A program made the position numbers and the translations under genes. DNA of 64,000 nt from assembly GCA_965112735.1 (NCBI GenBank), contig OZ218953.1, positions 3,162,001-3,226,000 of the forward strand. The letters run 5' to 3'. This DNA comes from Phaeosaccion multiseriatum. Its lineage: Eukaryota > Protista > Ochrophyta, other classes. Positions 53,937 through 61,523 of the stretch are shown here, in pieces (the stretch's first letter is position 1; the number at the start of each line of letters is the position of its first letter). A model generated the notes under the pieces. That model did no database searches and was not told the origin of the DNA. It was given only the letters and a program-made list of their open reading frames with translations.

Positions 53937-55736
53937 CTATGGGTCTATCCTTTGTGCTTTGGAAGGCCTTCCTCCTTGCGACGTTTCATTCTCCCTTGAC
54001 TGACGCCACCCCATGCAGACGAGCCACTTGCGTCGCTCCCATGCTGCAAGAGCGAGAGGCCAGCAGAAAAAAGGAGGGGGGGCGGCGAGGGTGCGAGCAA
54101 AGGGGACGATAAGGTCTTTCTCAGGCAGCCAAGCAGGCAGGCAGGCAGGCAGACAGGCAGGCAAGCAGGCAGGCAAGTAAGCAGGCAAGCAGGCAGGCAG
54201 GCAAGCAGGCAGGCAGGCAGGCAGGCAGACAGGCAGGCAGGCAGATAGACAGGTAATACCTGCGTCTCTGATCTCTTCTCGGATGCACTCTGCCATCTCG
54301 GGACTCGAAGCCAGTTCCAGGGCCGTTTTACCGGCGTCGTTCCAACCCTGCAGTGCATGGCTCCGAACCTGATGGTAACACCCAGCGCGTAAAAGACACC
54401 TCGCAACCATAAGGTGCCCACTTTGAGACGCTGCCATCAATGGAGTCATCCCACGCCAGTGTGCTTGATCTTTGTTCACGCCCACGGAAAGCAGCAGCTG
54501 CACCACCGCCGTATGCCCTTGTATACACGCCACCATGAAGGCAGTCAAACCATTTGCGTCCACATGGTCCTTGTTCACCCGAGCGTCGAGGAGCAGCTGC
54601 ACCACCGCCGTATGCCCTTCGGAACACGCTATGGTGAGGGAAGTCTGACCACCTGCGCCCACATGGTCCTTGTTCACCCCAGCGTCGAGGAGCAGCTGCA
54701 CCACCGCCGTATGCCCTTGCATACACGCTATGGTGAGGGCAGTCTGACCACCTGCGCCCACATGGTCCTTGTTCACGCCAGCGTCGAGGAGCAGCTGCAC
54801 CACCGCCGTATGCCCTTGGGAACACGCCGCTATTAAGGCAGTCAAACCATTTGCGTTCACATGGTCCTTGTTCACCCGAGCGTCGAGGAGCAGCTGGACC
54901 ACCGCCGTATGCCCTTGGTAACACGCCGCTGTGAGGGCAGTTGCACCATCTGCGTTCACATGGTCCTTGTTCACCCGAGCGTCGAGGAGCAGCTGCACCA
55001 CCGCCATATGCCCTTGGTGACACGCCATCATGAGGGCAGTCTGACCACCTGCGCCCACATGGTCCTTGTTCACCCGAGCGTCGAGGAGCAGCTGCACCAC
55101 CGCCGTATGCCCTTGCATACACGCTATGGTGAGGGCAGTCACACCACCTCCACCCACATGGTCCTTGTTCACGCCAGCGTCGAGGAGCAGCTGCACCACC
55201 GCCGTATGCCCTTGGGAACACGCTGTGGTGAGGGCAGTGGAACCACTTGCGTCAACATGGTCCTTGTTCACGCCAGCGTCGAGCAGCAGCTGCACCACCG
55301 CCGTATGCCCTTCGGAACACGCTGTGGTGAGGGCAGTCTGACCACTTGCGCTCACATGGTCCTTGTTCACGCCAGCGTCGAGCAGCAGCTGCACCACCGC
55401 CGTATGCCCTTGGTGACACGTCATCATGAGGGCAGTCTGACCACCTGCGCCCACATGGTCGTCCGTGTTTACCCGAGCGTCGAGGAGCAGCTGCACCACC
55501 GCCGCATGATTTATGATACACGCACACAAGAGTGCCGTCCTCCCCATATTGTCCCTGTAGTCCTTGTCCACACCAGCCAACAGCAGCTGCTGCACCGCCA
55601 CTTCATTACCTGTCAGACACGCCTTCATCAGCGAACTTCTTCCATCCCCATCCACATGATCCTTGTTGGCCAACAGCCATACCGTCTCCCGCTTCTTCCC
55701 TTCCTCCTCCTGTGCCCGCATTAACCGTGTGCGCAT
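53937..55736 (-). CDS. Ankyrin-repeat protein B (13 full repeats; exons 55736-54260, 54043-53937)
   Basis: Paralogue of 49055-50720 with one extra repeat and shuffled repeat order. Confidence 0.92.
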   Translation of the reverse strand: MRTRLMRAQEEEGKKRETVWLLANKDHVDGDGRSSLMKACLTGNEVAVQQLLLAGVDKDYRDNMGRTALLCACIINHAAVVQLLLDARVNTDDHVGAGGQTALMMTCHQGHTAVVQLLLDAGVNKDHVSASGQTALTTACSEGHTAVVQLLLDAGVNKDHVDASGSTALTTACSQGHTAVVQLLLDAGVNKDHVGGGGVTALTIACMQGHTAVVQLLLDARVNKDHVGAGGQTALMMACHQGHMAVVQLLLDARVNKDHVNADGATALTAACYQGHTAVVQLLLDARVNKDHVNANGLTALIAACSQGHTAVVQLLLDAGVNKDHVGAGGQTALTIACMQGHTAVVQLLLDAGVNKDHVGAGGQTSLTIACSEGHTAVVQLLLDARVNKDHVDANGLTAFMVACIQGHTAVVQLLLSVGVNKDQAHWRGMTPLMAASQSGHLMVARCLLRAGCYHQVRSHALQGWNDAGKTALELASSPEMAECIREEIRDAGITCLSACLPVCLPACLPACLPACLPAYLPACLPACLPACLPAWLPEKDLIVPFARTLAAPPPFFCWPLALAAWERRKWLVCMGWRQSRENETSQGGRPSKAQRIDP

Positions 55737-55967
55737 GATGCTTGCTTTTGCTTTGCTTACTCTTAACTGATCGTCTACTCAGCACCACCGAGGATATTTA
55801 TATATACCCCTTGGGACCACCACCAGTGGGAAAAAAGAACCGAACTGCCACTCAAACCTTCACCAACTCGGACATTACTTTTAGACAAATAGATGGCACT
55901 TAAAGGTATACAATCTCGATCTCCCCCAATTGTCTCCCCCTTTGAATTATATCCCCGGAGAGAGCCC

Positions 55968-58900
55968 ATGATTGGCGTCAGAGATAATAGAGCTGCAACG
56001 ATTCTGCTGCTGCTGTCTGCCTCTGCTGCCTACGCCTTCAACGCATCTCAGCTCGCAAAGCTGCAGCAGCATCAACCAAGGATCAACAAGGTGATGAAGG
56101 GAGGAGGGAAAATCCTGCCTCCGCCCTCTTTGCTCCATGCCCAGGAGTTGGGAAGTAGAAGGAGAAGCACCAGCACCAGCAGTAGCCCTACTACCACCGG
56201 CACTGCTCTCACGGATTCGACAAGCACTGTAGCACGGAGGGAGAATGCTGGTATACCTCGCCGTCTGCCCTCCCTGATGGAGACAGCGCAGCAAGAATTG
56301 CTCAGACAACAGCAGGAAGGAGGAAGGGAAAGGAGGAAGGAGAACGGCAAGCGCCGTCGGGAGAGAAACCTCAGTATCAAGCAAGACTTGGAGTCGAAGG
56401 ACCTGACGCCACTCAAGGTCAGGGCTTTGGAAGGGCCGTCGTGCCTTCGAATTCACTGGCGACTTGCACCCTGTTTCCCAAAATTGCTCTCGCTCTCGGC
56501 CTTTTGACTTTTTGGGTGCCGATGTGGCAAAATACAGGTCACCGCTTCTCCGGAGTTGCGAGCGCGCCTCCGACTAAAGGGTCGGGAGAAGAGGTCCAGA
56601 GTGTTTGTTTCACAAGAGGACCTACAACGGGAGGAAGGCTTGCTGGAAACCATCAGCGAGGCGATCACTGAGGCCTTTCCGCTCAAGGGTCTACCGTTTG
56701 TTCTCAGGTAAGGGCAGTAATACTTCAGAGAGTCAGGGGGATGGGGTCGCAGTCTTCCTTGTTGGAACAGAAGCTAGCCCACAACAAAGGCTGAGAAGGT
56801 TAGCTCTGGGCATTAGATTCCTCTGCTTGCTCCGCGCTGAGTACTTTCTCTCCTCCGTATCTCTTATCCTTATCGTGCAGTGTAAAGACAGATCGGGAAG
56901 GGGACAAGGCTCGGCTCACAGACGATGCCGGAATGCGAGAGGCGCTTCACTGGGCGGTGAGTGATACCTATGGTAACCAAAGTTTTCAGCCTCCGGGCTC
57001 TTGCCATTCTCCCCCCCGTGCTGTCCTTCCTGGGCCTGACTGTCCATATGCCCCCCCCCCCCCTCGCCTTTTGCCTTCATTGAAGGAGACGGAGGGCAAG
57101 GAGCTTTACATATTCCTCGACGTTCACCCCGATATCCCGGAGGAGGAAGTGCCGCCTTATTTGCAGAGTCTGCCCGACGTAGAGGACCCAGATCAGTGGC
57201 AGATGATTTCCTTCTACAGGTGAGTGATTCTCTTGCCCGTCCGAGACTCGTTACTCTTCCTCTCTCTCTCCCTCCCGCCCCCTCTCTCCTCTCCCTCTCT
57301 CTCTCCCTCTCTCTCCTCTCCCCCTCTCCTCTGTCTGTCTCCCTCTCTCCTCGCTCCTCTCCCTCTCTCCTCTCCCTCTCTCCTCTCCCTCTCTCTCTCT
57401 CGCCCTCTCTCTCCCTCCCTCTCTCCTCTCTCTGTCTCCCTCTCTCCTCTCTCCTCTCCCTCTCCCCTCTCTCCCTCTCTTCTCTCTCTCCTTCTCTCCT
57501 CTCCCTCTCTTCTCTCTCTCCTCTCCCTCTCTCCTCTCTCCTCTCTCTCTCCCTGTATCCCTCTCTTTCCTCTCCCTCTCTCCTCTCTCTTCCCCTCTCT
57601 CGTATCCCTCTCCTCTGTGTCTCCCTCTCTCTCCTTCCCTCTCTCCCCTCTCTCTCCCTCTCTCCTCTCTCTCTCTCTCCTCTCTCCTCTCCCTCCTCTC
57701 GCCGCAGCTGTAACTCACCGTGCTCGGGCATCCATCCCCCCCCCCCACCCTCCCCTCTCCCCTCCCCATCAGATTTGTGCCGATCGATGATCCGGAGACG
57801 TTCACGTTGATGCTGCAGATGCTGTGGAGGCCGCTGGGGGTGTTTGGGAGGGTGTATGTAGCCCACGAGGGCATCAATGCCCAAATGAGTGTACCTCTCC
57901 AAGTGATGGATCGCTTTAAGCTGGCTGTGGACTCCGTCGAGAAGCTGCAGGGTGTTTACATAAACAAGGTGAGAAGGAAGGGAACCTTGCGTGTGTGTGG
58001 GGGGGGCGATGTCGAGAGGGCTCTCTTTTTCTCTCTCTCTGTGTGTGTGTGTGTCTCTCTCTCTCTGTCCCTGTCTTTCTCTCTCCGGTGGGAAGGGCGG
58101 GCGGACGCGTTCACTCACTGAATTTGTATCAAATGAAGGAGATAGGGTAGCGCGCTGAACCCCCCCTCGTCATTGTGCCTGTTGTGCCTTCCTGCGCCCC
58201 CTCGCATCCGGGCAAGGATACGGAGGTCTGGAGTCGGGACAAGTTCAACTCGAGGAGGTGAGTGCCATAGAGTGCCATAGAGCGATGGCAGTGGGTGGGT
58301 CCTCTTGACGTGTCGTCCCATGTGGTGGATCTACAAAGTGAAGGCGGAATCCAATCCAAGACTGGCATTTTCCTTACGTACGTACATACTCTACCGCATG
58401 TCCCTGATGGCCACAACCACAAGGCCCTTTTCCAACCTGCATGTTCGGATGCGGCACCAAATCGTCTCTGACGGGTTGGACCCAGTCACTACGGCGCTGC
58501 AATTCGACTCCAACATTGGAGAGGGCATGGAGCCCGACGCTTGGCACGAGATGGTGGACAGGGACGACACCGTCGTTCTAGACTGTAGAAACACTTACGA
58601 AACGGATGTTGGCATTTTTGACACGGGTACGTAACGTTACGTATTCGGGGTCACGCAGCACTGGAGGTCTGACTTGACTGTCAGCGCCCACACATCCGAT
58701 TTGATTGATTGACTGACTGACTGACTGACTGACTGACTGACTGACTGACTGAGTGACTCACTGACTGGTTGGACGAACAACCGAATGTCTCAAGACTGAC
58801 GAACTGCTGGCGTGGCGTTTCCGGCCACCCATCCATGCGCCCCCTCTCCCCCCTCCCCCCTGCTTCCCTCCCCTCCCCACATGGATTTTTCCACCCCCGC

Positions 58901-60060
58901 CCGCTCCTCCCCCTCCCTCGGCACAGCCGTTCCGCTGGACACCTCCTTCTTCCGCGAGTCTTGGGACTCCTTACGGCAGTCCCTCCGAGACACACCCAAG
59001 GATCGCCCAGTGCTCACATACTGCACCGGGGGGATTCGGTGCGTCAAGATTGCCGCCTATCTGGAGCAGGAGATGGGCTTCACCAACGTCAAGCGCCTCA
59101 ATGGGGGCATTATAAAGTACGCCAGGTGAGTCATGACGTAGGTCCGAAAAGCCGAGAAGGAGGGGATGGTGTGGAGCAATTGGAGTGTTTCGTTACGTCG
59201 GTAAGCGGCGTTCCGACGCTCGCAAGTCGCGCGCCAGACGAGGTATAGTTACTTTGTTAATGTGTAGTTACTCGAGGGCTTCCATATACCCCAACCCGTG
59301 TTCCATGCGGACGGCAGGTGGTGGGTGGTGGTGACTTTCTAAACACGAGTGTCCTCCTGTCCTCTTGACTCGCCAGGTATATCAGCAAGCTGCAAGAGGA
59401 GGGGGGCACCACCAGCAAGTTCAAGGGAAAGAACTACGTGTTTGACAATCGAATGGGAGAGAGAATTACCCAAGACGTGCTCTCAAATTGTGATCAATGT
59501 GGGACCCCCAACGACGACCACGTGAGTAGATCAAGGAGAACCCAAGAAGAAGATAGAGTGACTTGACACGTTTGGTACAGAGAGAGTTGTGTATGGTTGG
59601 GTGGAGAGAGAAGGCTTTTGGCAGTGCGGACACGACAGTGTTTGTGTATGCGTTGTGGGTTTCGGCGGTCGGCGTGAGTGTGGAGTAACGAGCGACTGTT
59701 TTTTCATCTAAATTTGATGCGCTCTCAGGTGAATTGTCGTAACGAACGCTGTGACGTCAGATTCATACAGTGCTCAGCCTGTGGTCAAAAGTACGACGGC
59801 TGCTGCAGCAAAGCGTGCCAAATCATGCGCGCAGCAGTACTAGCTGGTGACACGGCAGCGGTTGGGGCAGCAGCAGTAGCACCAGCAACAGGTGGTGGAC
59901 TATCCTCGGGGGGTGTGCTCACCGCGCCTTCCACGAGACGCGCTACTCTACCGCCGAACATCGCCAAGGTGGTGCAAGCGCAGCAGGGAGCACATCCAAT
60001 CTCTGCGGGTACTGCGGCCACCATCACTACGGATACTCCTCCCCACAGTAGCGAGGACGC

Positions 60061-60091
<31 letters not shown>

Positions 60092-61163
60092 CAGGAGCAG
60101 CGGGAGGTTGTGCCGCAGCGGTTTCAGAACACAGGCCTCAATCGCAAGATGGATGAGCTCATGGAGCGGTATGCCTCTGACAAGTCCAGCGAGGAGCCAG
60201 CCCTCCTCGCACGACTGCGGTGAGTGTGCGAGAGTGGGGCTGAGAGTGCCGTGTTGGAGAGTTTTCAGTTTATGTGACCTATCAATATCGAACACCATAA
60301 ATGGTGTTCATACCGAAGCTTCTGTGTTGCCTACTCCCATGGATGTTAGAGAGTGGGGTTGAGAATCCCATAGATCAATTGGACGCTTTTTGGGAGGGTG
60401 GGGAGGTGAAGAGCACTACCATGAGTTAGTTGGGTACGTGTGCAACCCAACCTCTTCCGTTTGCGTTGCGTTTGTAGTAAGCATGGCAGCGTTCGTTGCC
60501 CTCCGCTCCCCCGCCCCCCCAGGTTGTCCTTGCTTACTTACTTACGTACTTACTTACTTACCTCTGAATGAATGCACACGCGAACACAGGAAGGAGACAT
60601 CCGAGGCGTACTCATCGGCGGCCCATATGCTTGCGGGTCACCTCCAAGGGCGGCTTCTTACGCTCTTGACGAAACTACTCGGTGCCCAAAGAGTCTTGGA
60701 GATTGGCTGTTTTACAGGCTACAGTGCGCTGTGCTTTGCGGAGGGTCTTTGTTCGACTGCGGACGACCCCTCGACGACTGAGGGCCTCGACAGCCTCGCT
60801 GGTACATCGGGCCAGAGGAAGGACGAGAGGAGGGACCAAGAAGTCGTGACGTGCGAGATTGATCCGCGATGCGCCGCTTTTGCGCAGCGTTTCTTCGATG
60901 AGAGCGAGTACGGCGGCAGAATACGTGTCGAGCTTCGACCGGCGATGGACACGCTTCAGGGTATGGTGGAGGGAGGAGAGCAACCCTTTGATATCGTCTT
61001 TATCGACGGAGACAAGCGCATGTACCGGACATACTACGACACGATAATGGACAATCGCTTGTTGAGCAAGAATGGCATCTTGCTGGTGGACAATGTCATG
61101 TTTCATGGGGAGGTTCTGGAAGTGGAGCAGGAGAGGAGCGAGGAGGCAAGCCAGGATGGCAGT

Positions 61164-61196
<33 letters not shown>

Positions 61197-61255
61197 GGTG
61201 GAGCACTGAGCGAGGTAGGAGGGCTTGAAGCTGAAGGAGTACCAGCAGCAACAAG

Positions 61256-61299
<44 letters not shown>

Positions 61300-61523
61300 C
61301 ATCAGTAGTGGCATCGGCAGCAGCAGTAGTCGGAGCTGAGGCAGGAGCAGGCGGAAGGGGAGGAGGAAAGGAGGACAAAATTCTGGCCAAACGAGTGAAG
61401 AGGCGGAGAAGAATCGCCGAGAGCCTGGCGGACTTCAATGACCACGTCAACGCCGACCCTCGGGTAGAGATCGTCGTGCTTCCCTTGAGGGACGGTCTAA
61501 CACTGGTGCGATGGAAAGGCTGA
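55968..61523 (+). CDS. Fusion protein (~1012 aa): bipartite targeting leader + TrhO/YceA (UPF0176 rhodanese) tRNA U34 hydroxylase + CCoAOMT/TrmR-type SAM O-methyltransferase; exons 55968-56417, 56538-56707, 56881-56956, 57086-57219, 57773-57968, 58217-58257, 58424-58626, 58927-59125, 59377-59521, 59729-60219, 60590-61523
   Basis: TrhO motifs: ISFYRF, GRVYVAHEGINAQ, LDCRNTYETDVGIF, YCTGGIRCVK, LNGGIIKY, FKGKNYVFDNR, Cys-rich CDQCG..NCRNERC..CSAC..CCSKAC. Methyltransferase motifs: EEPALLARLRKET, QGRLL, VLEIGCFTGYS, FDIVFIDGDK, LVDNVMFHG, LPLRDGLTL. All 10 introns are phase-consistent (3039 nt total). Confidence 0.9.

Follow-up and report, generated by a model that had tools for sequence, protein, structure and literature searches.

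Within a 64,000-nt stretch of the genome of the ochrophyte alga Phaeosaccion multiseriatum (GenBank assembly GCA_965112735.1, contig OZ218953.1, positions 3,162,001 to 3,226,000; hereafter the window, whose own numbering is used below), we analyzed a plus-strand gene at 55968-61523 that combines a TrhO (YceA) module, the type of enzyme that hydroxylates tRNA, with an O-methyltransferase of the Methyltransf_3 family. Our sequence comparisons confirmed the prediction that one gene encodes a fused TrhO-methyltransferase protein. On the basis of its architecture, we consider it rather probable that this protein is a bifunctional enzyme that would convert uridine at tRNA position 34 (U34) to 5-hydroxyuridine (ho5U) and then to 5-methoxyuridine (mo5U) in a single polypeptide. 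The same two-step interpretation had been offered in a preliminary description of this stretch. Its architecture, its linking exon and its two-step logic hold; its assumption that the fusion is new does not, and its comparison of the methyltransferase half with TrmR of Bacillus subtilis was too specific.

The gene and the exon that joins its halves

The preliminary description had a complete TrhO/YceA-type module running into an O-methyltransferase, and this is borne out by Pfam, by NCBIfam and by colinear homologues. First, the open reading frame (ORF) at 59678-60223 is uninterrupted and contains VNCRNERCDVRFIQCSACGQKYDGCCSKAC, which corresponds to positions 34-66 of the 66-position Rhodanese_C profile, and then, approximately 110 residues on, MDELMERYASDKSSEEPALLARLR. 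Second, the donor GCG/GTGAGT at 60219/60220 and the acceptor CACAG/G at 60589/60590 join LLARLR in frame to KETSEAY (KETSEAYSSAAHM), and this junction between exons 8 and 9 was the top-scoring candidate against homologues. Third, a hidden Markov model (HMM) of the methyltransferase domain, derived from standalone bacterial Methyltransf_3 proteins and the domains of two Phytophthora fusion proteins (alignment A2), aligned with the protein from residue 701 in exon 8 (model position 5), across the junction at residues 723/724, as far as the C-terminus (model position 215 of 217), with two insertions between. Because this alignment begins at residue 701 in exon 8, the methyltransferase domain starts within the exon that ends the TrhO module; and because the first 23 residues of the domain lie in exon 8, a methyltransferase begun at exon 9 would be without its first helix. 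The open frame and the start of the HMM alignment therefore agree with the earlier observation that the exon at 59729-60219 carries both the Cys-rich tail of TrhO and the first methyltransferase helix. Exon 8 is also spanned continuously by one tblastn segment (59726-60220) of the Phaeothamnion protein P0139; the Phaeothamnion homologue, the closest one, reached 603 bits over three tblastn segments. In the same type of search, the whole length of PITG_18101 from Phytophthora infestans matched the window colinearly, and a further 16 fusion proteins were likewise matched.

In the TrhO half, the domain order UPF0176_N, Rhodanese and Rhodanese_C is colinear with that of Escherichia coli TrhO and of the fusion homologues. 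The NCBIfam TrhO equivalog matched three exons with 36.4, 53.8 and 63.4 bits; the cut-off of this model (NF001133), 170 bits, applies to a whole protein, and the window was scored by single exons only. Among the orthologues, P0125 from Chattonella lies above the cut-off (203.1 bits) and P0139 slightly under it (165.3 bits). When the window model was aligned with E. coli TrhO (K-12 record) and 16 fusion proteins, C478, T479, G481 and R483 of the window corresponded to C200, T201, G203 and R205 of the E. coli protein, and R386 and R388 to K112 and R114 on the basic beta-sheet surface. In E. coli TrhO, all six of these residues are needed for tRNA hydroxylation, and the basic sheet that includes K112 and R114 has been proposed to hold the tRNA (PMC6599085). 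The six positions are kept in all 16 of the fusion proteins aligned, and the active-site loop CTGGIRC (residues 478-484) is identical throughout them.

The methyltransferase half is likewise equipped for catalysis, as far as its motifs can be read. Its membership in Methyltransf_3 is indicated by a full-length domain (HMM 5-215 of 217) in which the S-adenosylmethionine (SAM) motif and the Asp/Asp/Asn metal site are kept. The SAM motif VLEIGCFTGYSAL occupies residues 759-771, the acidic residue E813 stands at the end of strand 2, and the metal/substrate motifs FIDGDK (D863, K866) and VDN (D891, N892) are intact, D863, D891 and N892 being the counterparts of the TrmR Mg2+ ligands D133, D159 and N160 (PMC6158493). 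An AlphaFold model of exon 9 had a mean predicted local distance difference test score (pLDDT) of 82.5, was confident outside the two insertions, and matched solved Methyltransf_3 enzymes with Z 26-27. The insertions, at residues 780-805 (window 60750-60830) and about residues 911-992 (window 61120-61390), are low-complexity surface loops on the plus strand with pLDDT 40-61; one of them is (GCA)n-like and encodes runs of Ser and Ala. A basic stretch, KRVKRRRR (residues 991-998, plus strand), directly follows the second. A hidden intron within the 82-residue insertion was considered and rejected: it holds zero in-frame GT[AG]AG...AG pairs, and we therefore treated the insertion as coding, with (GCA)n-type repeats.

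The gene model was guided by homologues and used canonical GT/AG sites only. It comprises nine exons, all on the plus strand, with every junction GT-AG, and yields a spliced product of 1034 residues with no internal stops; its bounds are those given in the preliminary description. GC content is higher at third than at second codon positions in all nine exons. The start codon may be the ATG at 55968 or an in-frame ATG at 55893. Exon 1 (55968-56417) carries the start codon, a hydrophobic stretch resembling a signal peptide, a Ser/Thr/Arg-rich stretch and the first residues of a beta-grasp domain; homology backs its last few residues only, its third-position GC content is 0.62, and its best junction is the donor AAG/GTCAGG at 56417. 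Exon 2 (56538-56707), covered by tblastn segments of P0139, P0131, P0143 and P0268 at 56532-56705, encodes the first half of the beta-grasp (PB1/ubiquitin-like) domain, seen only in algal fusion proteins. Exon 3 (56983-57219) comprises a variable loop and the second half of that domain (LYIFLDVHPD...PPYLQSLPD), after which UPF0176_N begins (ISFYR); it has tblastn support at 57083-57226 and the donor CAG/GTGAGT at 57219, and the placement of its acceptor is tentative. Exon 4 (57773-57968) holds the UPF0176_N domain (GRVYVAHEGINAQ; PF17773, E 3e-15) and gave one of the NCBIfam TrhO matches. Exon 5 (58344-58626; 53.8 bits) encodes the rhodanese domain's first half, in which R386 and R388 fall within HVRMRHQIV (nt 58440-58466). 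Conservation in this exon runs from 58422, and its 5' edge may lie at 58344, paired with a good donor at 57968, or at 58424, paired with a poor one, a choice that alters the variable loop only. Exon 6 (58927-59125; 63.4 bits) contains the rhodanese active-site loop at nt 59022-59042, and exon 7 (59377-59521) the first half of Rhodanese_C (FKGKNYVFDNRMGERIT...CDQCGTPNDDH; PF12368). The linking exon, exon 8, carries the second half of the Cys-rich tail (residues 561-590), a low-complexity linker of about 110 residues rich in Ala, Gly and Gln, and the first methyltransferase helix (residues 701-723, nt 60149-60219). Intron 8 (60220-60589; 370 nt, GTGAGT...CACAG) interrupts the methyltransferase domain, the remainder of which, with the stop codon, is encoded by exon 9 (60590-61523; PF01596, E 3.9e-40).

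The domain search that had been suggested earlier matched all four families. On open frames, Pfam placed UPF0176_N at 57720-58121 (E 3e-15), Rhodanese at 58812-59129 (E 1.7e-7), Rhodanese_C in two pieces at 59438-59566 and 59678-60223, and Methyltransf_3 at 60390-61523 (E 3.9e-40). Intron 3 (57220-57772) contains a long CT-rich tract with a GC skew of about -0.84 and an AT skew of about -0.87; a Glu/Arg-rich minus-strand ORF of 400 residues at 56916-58118, considered as a separate gene, was rejected because it is the complement of this CT-rich intron. Upstream, the minus strand at 53937-55736 bears an open frame of 599 residues composed of near-identical ankyrin repeats (GHTAVVQLLLDAGVNKDH...) and ending in a Cys/Leu/Pro-rich repeat (CLPACLPA...). 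It is arranged head-to-head with the fusion gene, at a distance of 231 bp from the ATG at 55968, and its exact product was absent from the records searched.

Distribution of the fusion and its accessory domains

Is this arrangement peculiar to Phaeosaccion? It is not new: fusions of yceA (trhO) with trmR were reported for Phytophthora sojae, for Phytophthora ramorum and for Phaeodactylum tricornutum by Sakai et al. (2019, PMC6599085, section 8 and legend of Fig. 3b). These authors used the fusion as a clue to the function of TrhO, so it is already a published Rosetta-stone argument, and they suggested from the eukaryotic homologues of TrhO that wobble modification of the xo5U type (5-hydroxyuridine derivatives) occurs in eukaryotes (PMC6599085). 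The architecture is also common in public proteomes. The full set of UPF0176_N, Rhodanese, Rhodanese_C and Methyltransf_3 was present in 21 of the 47 longest representatives drawn from the 150 best methyltransferase-exon matches, and a search with the closest homologue retrieved 186 clusters at 90% identity (E <= 1e-20), with the same architecture in most of the 120 best listed. The survey of other algal proteomes proposed in the preliminary description thus found the fusion widely: in diatoms (Cylindrotheca, Nitzschia, Pseudo-nitzschia, Cyclotella, Thalassiosira and Stephanocyclus), in Ochromonadaceae, Chattonella and Phaeothamnion, in the red algae Gracilariopsis, Gracilaria, Agarophyton and Rhodosorus, and in Vitrella, the dinoflagellate Alexandrium, Plasmodiophora and oomycetes. 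Several of the matches are MMETSP transcripts labelled 'type:complete', which provides transcript-level support for the fusion in relatives. The protein of the window itself was absent from the protein collections searched; its best match was a protein of Phaeothamnion confervicola with 48% identity. Judged by sequence, the gene is an orthologue of the Phytophthora/Phaeodactylum YceA-TrmR fusion, and it adds one lineage to a known, uncharacterised family. In this last respect the preliminary description was right, in that our literature search found no biochemical characterisation of any eukaryotic TrhO-Methyltransf_3 fusion.

Common to the algal fusion proteins is an additional N-terminal domain of about 120 residues, for which there was no Pfam match. 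In the window it lies at 56403-57205 (about residues 146-281, exons 1-3); oomycete, Plasmodiophora and bacterial versions are without it. AlphaFold, applied to 18 homologues of the domain (alignment A3), gave a model with pLDDT 86.7 and a beta-grasp fold of the PB1/ubiquitin/MoaD-like kind, with Z 8.8 to 1OEY_J and 8.5 to 1WMH_B and a best Foldseek E-value of only 0.024.

Two further variants were noted during the survey. One protein of 1563 residues (P0267) combines two TrhO modules and Methyltransf_3 with a part resembling the poly(A) polymerase MTPAP, and may be a merged gene model. In addition, several proteins that Pfam recorded as TrhO-only, from brown algae (P0293, P0324, P0360 and P0297), from Tribonema (P0286) and under P0291, P0385, P0386 and P0388, have a degenerate methyltransferase-like C-terminal domain in which the SAM motif, DxDK and DN are gone and the '...WKG' end is retained. 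From its sequence this domain looks like a pseudo-methyltransferase, and in those lineages the pathway may therefore end at ho5U, or the domain may have a structural use.

Type of methyltransferase, substrate and compartment

How might such a protein act? In the reaction that we propose, the TrhO module would bind tRNAs with U34 and make 5-hydroxyuridine using O2, and the tethered methyltransferase would then move the methyl group of SAM to the metal-activated 5-hydroxyl to produce mo5U34, with the cation held by D863, D891 and N892. Because the linker is long (about 110 residues) and of low complexity, we favour tethering, which would keep the second enzyme at high local concentration, over a fixed channel; a rigid channel need not be invoked. 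TrmR and other members of its family are dimers (PMC6158493), so the fusion may dimerise via its methyltransferase half. The plastid would be the most likely site, where a small set of tRNAs relies on U34 for whole four-codon boxes.

Apart from the TrhO residues described above, several observations point to an RNA substrate for the methyltransferase half. In fused domains, Lys or Arg stands where the nearest standalone bacterial homologues have Ser, Asp or Glu, and the fused group has a mean net charge of -2.2 across the domain, versus -8.2 in the nearest standalone bacterial proteins. The columns that gain Lys or Arg are those next after DN-x-L-aromatic and next after DxDK, together with a run that precedes the last helix; the window has His at the first of these and KRVKRRRR before the last helix. 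The domains most similar to that of the window, P0123 (54% identical) and P0122 (49%), are both fused to a SpoU-type RNA 2'-O-methyltransferase, as is P0281, which shares a 90%-identity cluster with P0122. P0122 is a single uninterrupted ORF on a metagenome contig (locus L083:3347-5518). Assignment of the SpoU part to the TrmL-like enzymes, which act at the wobble position, was rejected: it is RlmB/TrmH-like, and the methyltransferase subgroup is therefore linked to RNA and not to position 34. The fusion itself is conserved over stramenopiles, alveolates, Rhizaria and red algae. Finally, mo5U has been found by mass spectrometry in RNA of Synechocystis (PMC12860351), whose O-methyltransferase SynOMT is the closest solved relative in sequence, a coincidence that bears on a tRNA substrate only circumstantially.

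To which subfamily does the methyltransferase half belong? The preliminary description placed it in the same family as TrmR, and suggested a comparison with TrmR, the plant caffeoyl-CoA O-methyltransferases (CCoAOMT) and COMTD1. The placement is correct at the level of PF01596, which all of them share; below that level SynOMT, COMTD1 and CCoAOMT are all closer to the fused domain than TrmR, which is the least close of these. Synechocystis SynOMT (3CBG) scored 101 bits as a single sequence and 208 bits against the family profile, with a structure-based identity of 39%. The corresponding values were 73 bits, 168 bits and 36% for human COMTD1 (2AVD), 49 bits, 160 bits and 27% for alfalfa CCoAOMT (1SUI), and 40 bits, 119 bits and 25-26% for B. 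subtilis TrmR (5ZW3); the second solved TrmR (8K1F) scored 33 and 120.5 bits. Among 429 methyltransferase domains placed in a tree, that of the window belonged to a clade of 112 in which fusion proteins predominate (support 0.79). The fused domains formed three groups, one of most algae, one of red algae and some others, and one of oomycetes; the bacterial neighbours nearest to them were cyanobacteria and a few actinobacteria, with rooting and deep support weak. On sequence and structural similarity, the methyltransferase half belongs with the cyanobacterial SynOMT/COMTD1 type, and not with the Bacillus TrmR type.

This assignment is among the points that weigh against a bifunctional U34 enzyme. 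Both solved TrmRs ranked about 40th or lower among the PDB sequence matches, and structure-based identity was 35-39% to SynOMT, SafC, a Coxiella enzyme and COMTD1 versus 25-26% to TrmR. The nearest characterised relatives of the methyltransferase half are enzymes that methylate small catechols. Arg-86 and Arg-90 form a signature of TrmR orthologues (Ryu et al. 2018, PMC6158493). Mapped by motif spacing (counted from the GYS, E85, A114, DxDK and DN motifs) and not by residue alignment, these positions are Ile and Cys in the window, with an Arg at 89; by the same mapping, Lys or Arg at both equivalents was found in 0 of 390 retrieved relatives. A basic stretch, residues 991-998, lies near the region of TrmR Arg-178, to which it may correspond. 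In the TrhO half, most Cys of the Cys-rich tail are kept, with N557 in place of the third Cys in the E. coli protein and D569 in place of one His. Neither trhO nor trhP was found within 6 kb of any of the 80 closest bacterial methyltransferase homologues (tblastn with E. coli TrhO, the TrhO part of the Phytophthora protein and E. coli TrhP). Our literature search found no report of xo5U in eukaryotic or organellar tRNA.

These points lead to the alternative that the fused pair acts on a substrate other than tRNA U34. It might, for instance, hydroxylate and next O-methylate some small metabolite of aromatic or catechol type, or a different site in RNA, its methyltransferase acting in the manner of SynOMT or COMTD1. 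The closest solved and characterised methyltransferase relatives are small-molecule O-methyltransferases, the TrmR-specific arginines are apparently absent, and the authors of a Mycobacterium preprint were equally cautious about the term 'TrmR homologue'. The lack of trhO/trhP neighbourhoods among the closest bacterial homologues also belongs on this side; taken by itself, we read it as neither supporting nor refuting a tRNA substrate, and no neighbouring family recurred in more than 11 of the 80 loci. However, the TrhO half retains all of the residues needed for tRNA hydroxylation, the basic tRNA-binding surface included, and small-molecule activity is known for no TrhO. The basic residues gained in fused methyltransferase domains are near the active-site side, and the same subgroup is joined to an RNA methyltransferase of the SpoU type. 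We therefore regard this alternative as unlikely, and continue to favour the conversion of U34 to mo5U.

If that conversion does occur, where would it take place? The preliminary description had predicted action in an organelle, and the N-terminus, read by eye, makes an organellar destination plausible, the plastid being the likeliest one in this alga. The predicted sequence, MIGVRDNRAATILLLLSASAAYA/FNAS..., has a hydrophobic stretch ending AYA/F and then a Ser/Thr/Arg-rich stretch. A hydrophobic signal, a Phe and a transit-peptide-like stretch (the ASAFAP-type motif) form the import pattern of complex red-derived plastids. N-termini with a signal followed by Phe also occur in the orthologues P0209 and P0268, and the Rhodosorus orthologue begins with a transit-peptide-like sequence. 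Lineages may differ in the compartment used: presequences rich in Arg occur in Plasmodiophora and in one oomycete-like protein, and Phytophthora PITG_18101 is without an N-terminal extension. Reading by eye and an uncertain start codon both count against the plastid assignment, and so the same chemistry might take place in mitochondria or the cytosol. The orthologues in plastid-less oomycetes and Plasmodiophora, whose N-termini are bare or resemble Arg-rich mitochondrial presequences, fit that possibility, and a start at 55893 would put 33 residues before the hydrophobic stretch, which is unusual for a signal peptide. On the other hand, the window and several algal orthologues share the hydrophobic stretch, the Phe and the Ser/Thr/Arg-rich region, and red-algal orthologues have transit-peptide-like N-termini; for this alga we find the non-plastid site improbable.

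It is very improbable that the fusion is an artefact of reading, with neighbouring genes, an internal promoter or alternative polyadenylation yielding separate proteins: an exact 32-nt search of metagenome and metatranscriptome contigs for the spliced exon 8/9 junction gave zero matches, and the linker is a long, low-complexity one, but the first 23 methyltransferase residues share an uninterrupted exon with the TrhO tail, a methyltransferase from exon 9 would miss its first helix, and complete transcripts and gene models of the fusion come from many lineages.

We speculate further, and with more doubt than confidence, that the methyltransferase half may represent a second, SynOMT-type lineage of ho5U-tRNA methyltransferases. 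If so, mo5U34 would be present in the plastids of red-lineage algae (and, in oomycetes and Plasmodiophora, in mitochondria or the cytosol) as the first eukaryotic xo5U-type wobble modification, 'catechol' O-methyltransferases such as Synechocystis SynOMT would be tRNA enzymes, and the animal TSTD2/COMTD1 pairing might have the same explanation. A fused hydroxylase and methyltransferase preceded by a plastid-type presequence leads to a concrete prediction, namely that the plastid tRNAs reading four-codon boxes carry mo5U34, and the fusion would be a convenient single-gene handle in transformable diatoms. The question of xo5U at the eukaryotic wobble position was posed already in 2019, and Phaeodactylum is a better test system than this alga. 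What our analysis adds to that earlier work is the SynOMT/COMTD1-type assignment, the gain of a basic surface, the algal beta-grasp domain and the degenerate methyltransferase domain of brown algae.

Comparison with known systems

Previous work offers four systems with which the predicted protein can be compared. E. coli TrhO (YceA) has its three-domain module in common with the fused protein, as well as the CTGGIR loop and the basic residues at K112 and R114. In contrast to the fused protein of the window, it is a standalone protein of 350 residues, in E. coli the modification proceeds to uridine 5-oxyacetic acid (cmo5U) via CmoA and CmoB, and the Cys-rich tail of E. coli TrhO has one Cys and one His more than the window tail (N557, D569). 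B. subtilis TrmR (YrrM; 5ZW3/5ZW4; PMC6158493) shares with the methyltransferase half its Pfam family, its fold (Z 23.6-23.9), the SAM and Asp/Asp/Asn motifs and the Lys of DxDK; it is an ho5U34 O-methyltransferase, standalone and in an operon with trhP1 and trhP2, and the window domain is only 25-26% identical to it. Closest to that domain among solved sequences and structures are SynOMT (3CBG; 39% identity, Z 26.2), Myxococcus SafC, the Coxiella enzyme 3TR6 and human COMTD1 (2AVD; 36%). These enzymes stand alone, are acidic and have been described as O-methyltransferases of catechols or hydroxycinnamates, whereas the domain of the window is joined to TrhO, and the fused domains have additional basic residues. 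Finally, PITG_18101 of P. infestans (P0019, 621 residues) has all four Pfam domains in the order of the window (UPF0176_N, Rhodanese, Rhodanese_C, linker and Methyltransf_3) together with the catalytic motifs; the Phaeosaccion protein is about 400 residues longer, with a presequence and a beta-grasp domain that are missing from the oomycete proteins and with low-complexity insertions in the linker and the methyltransferase.

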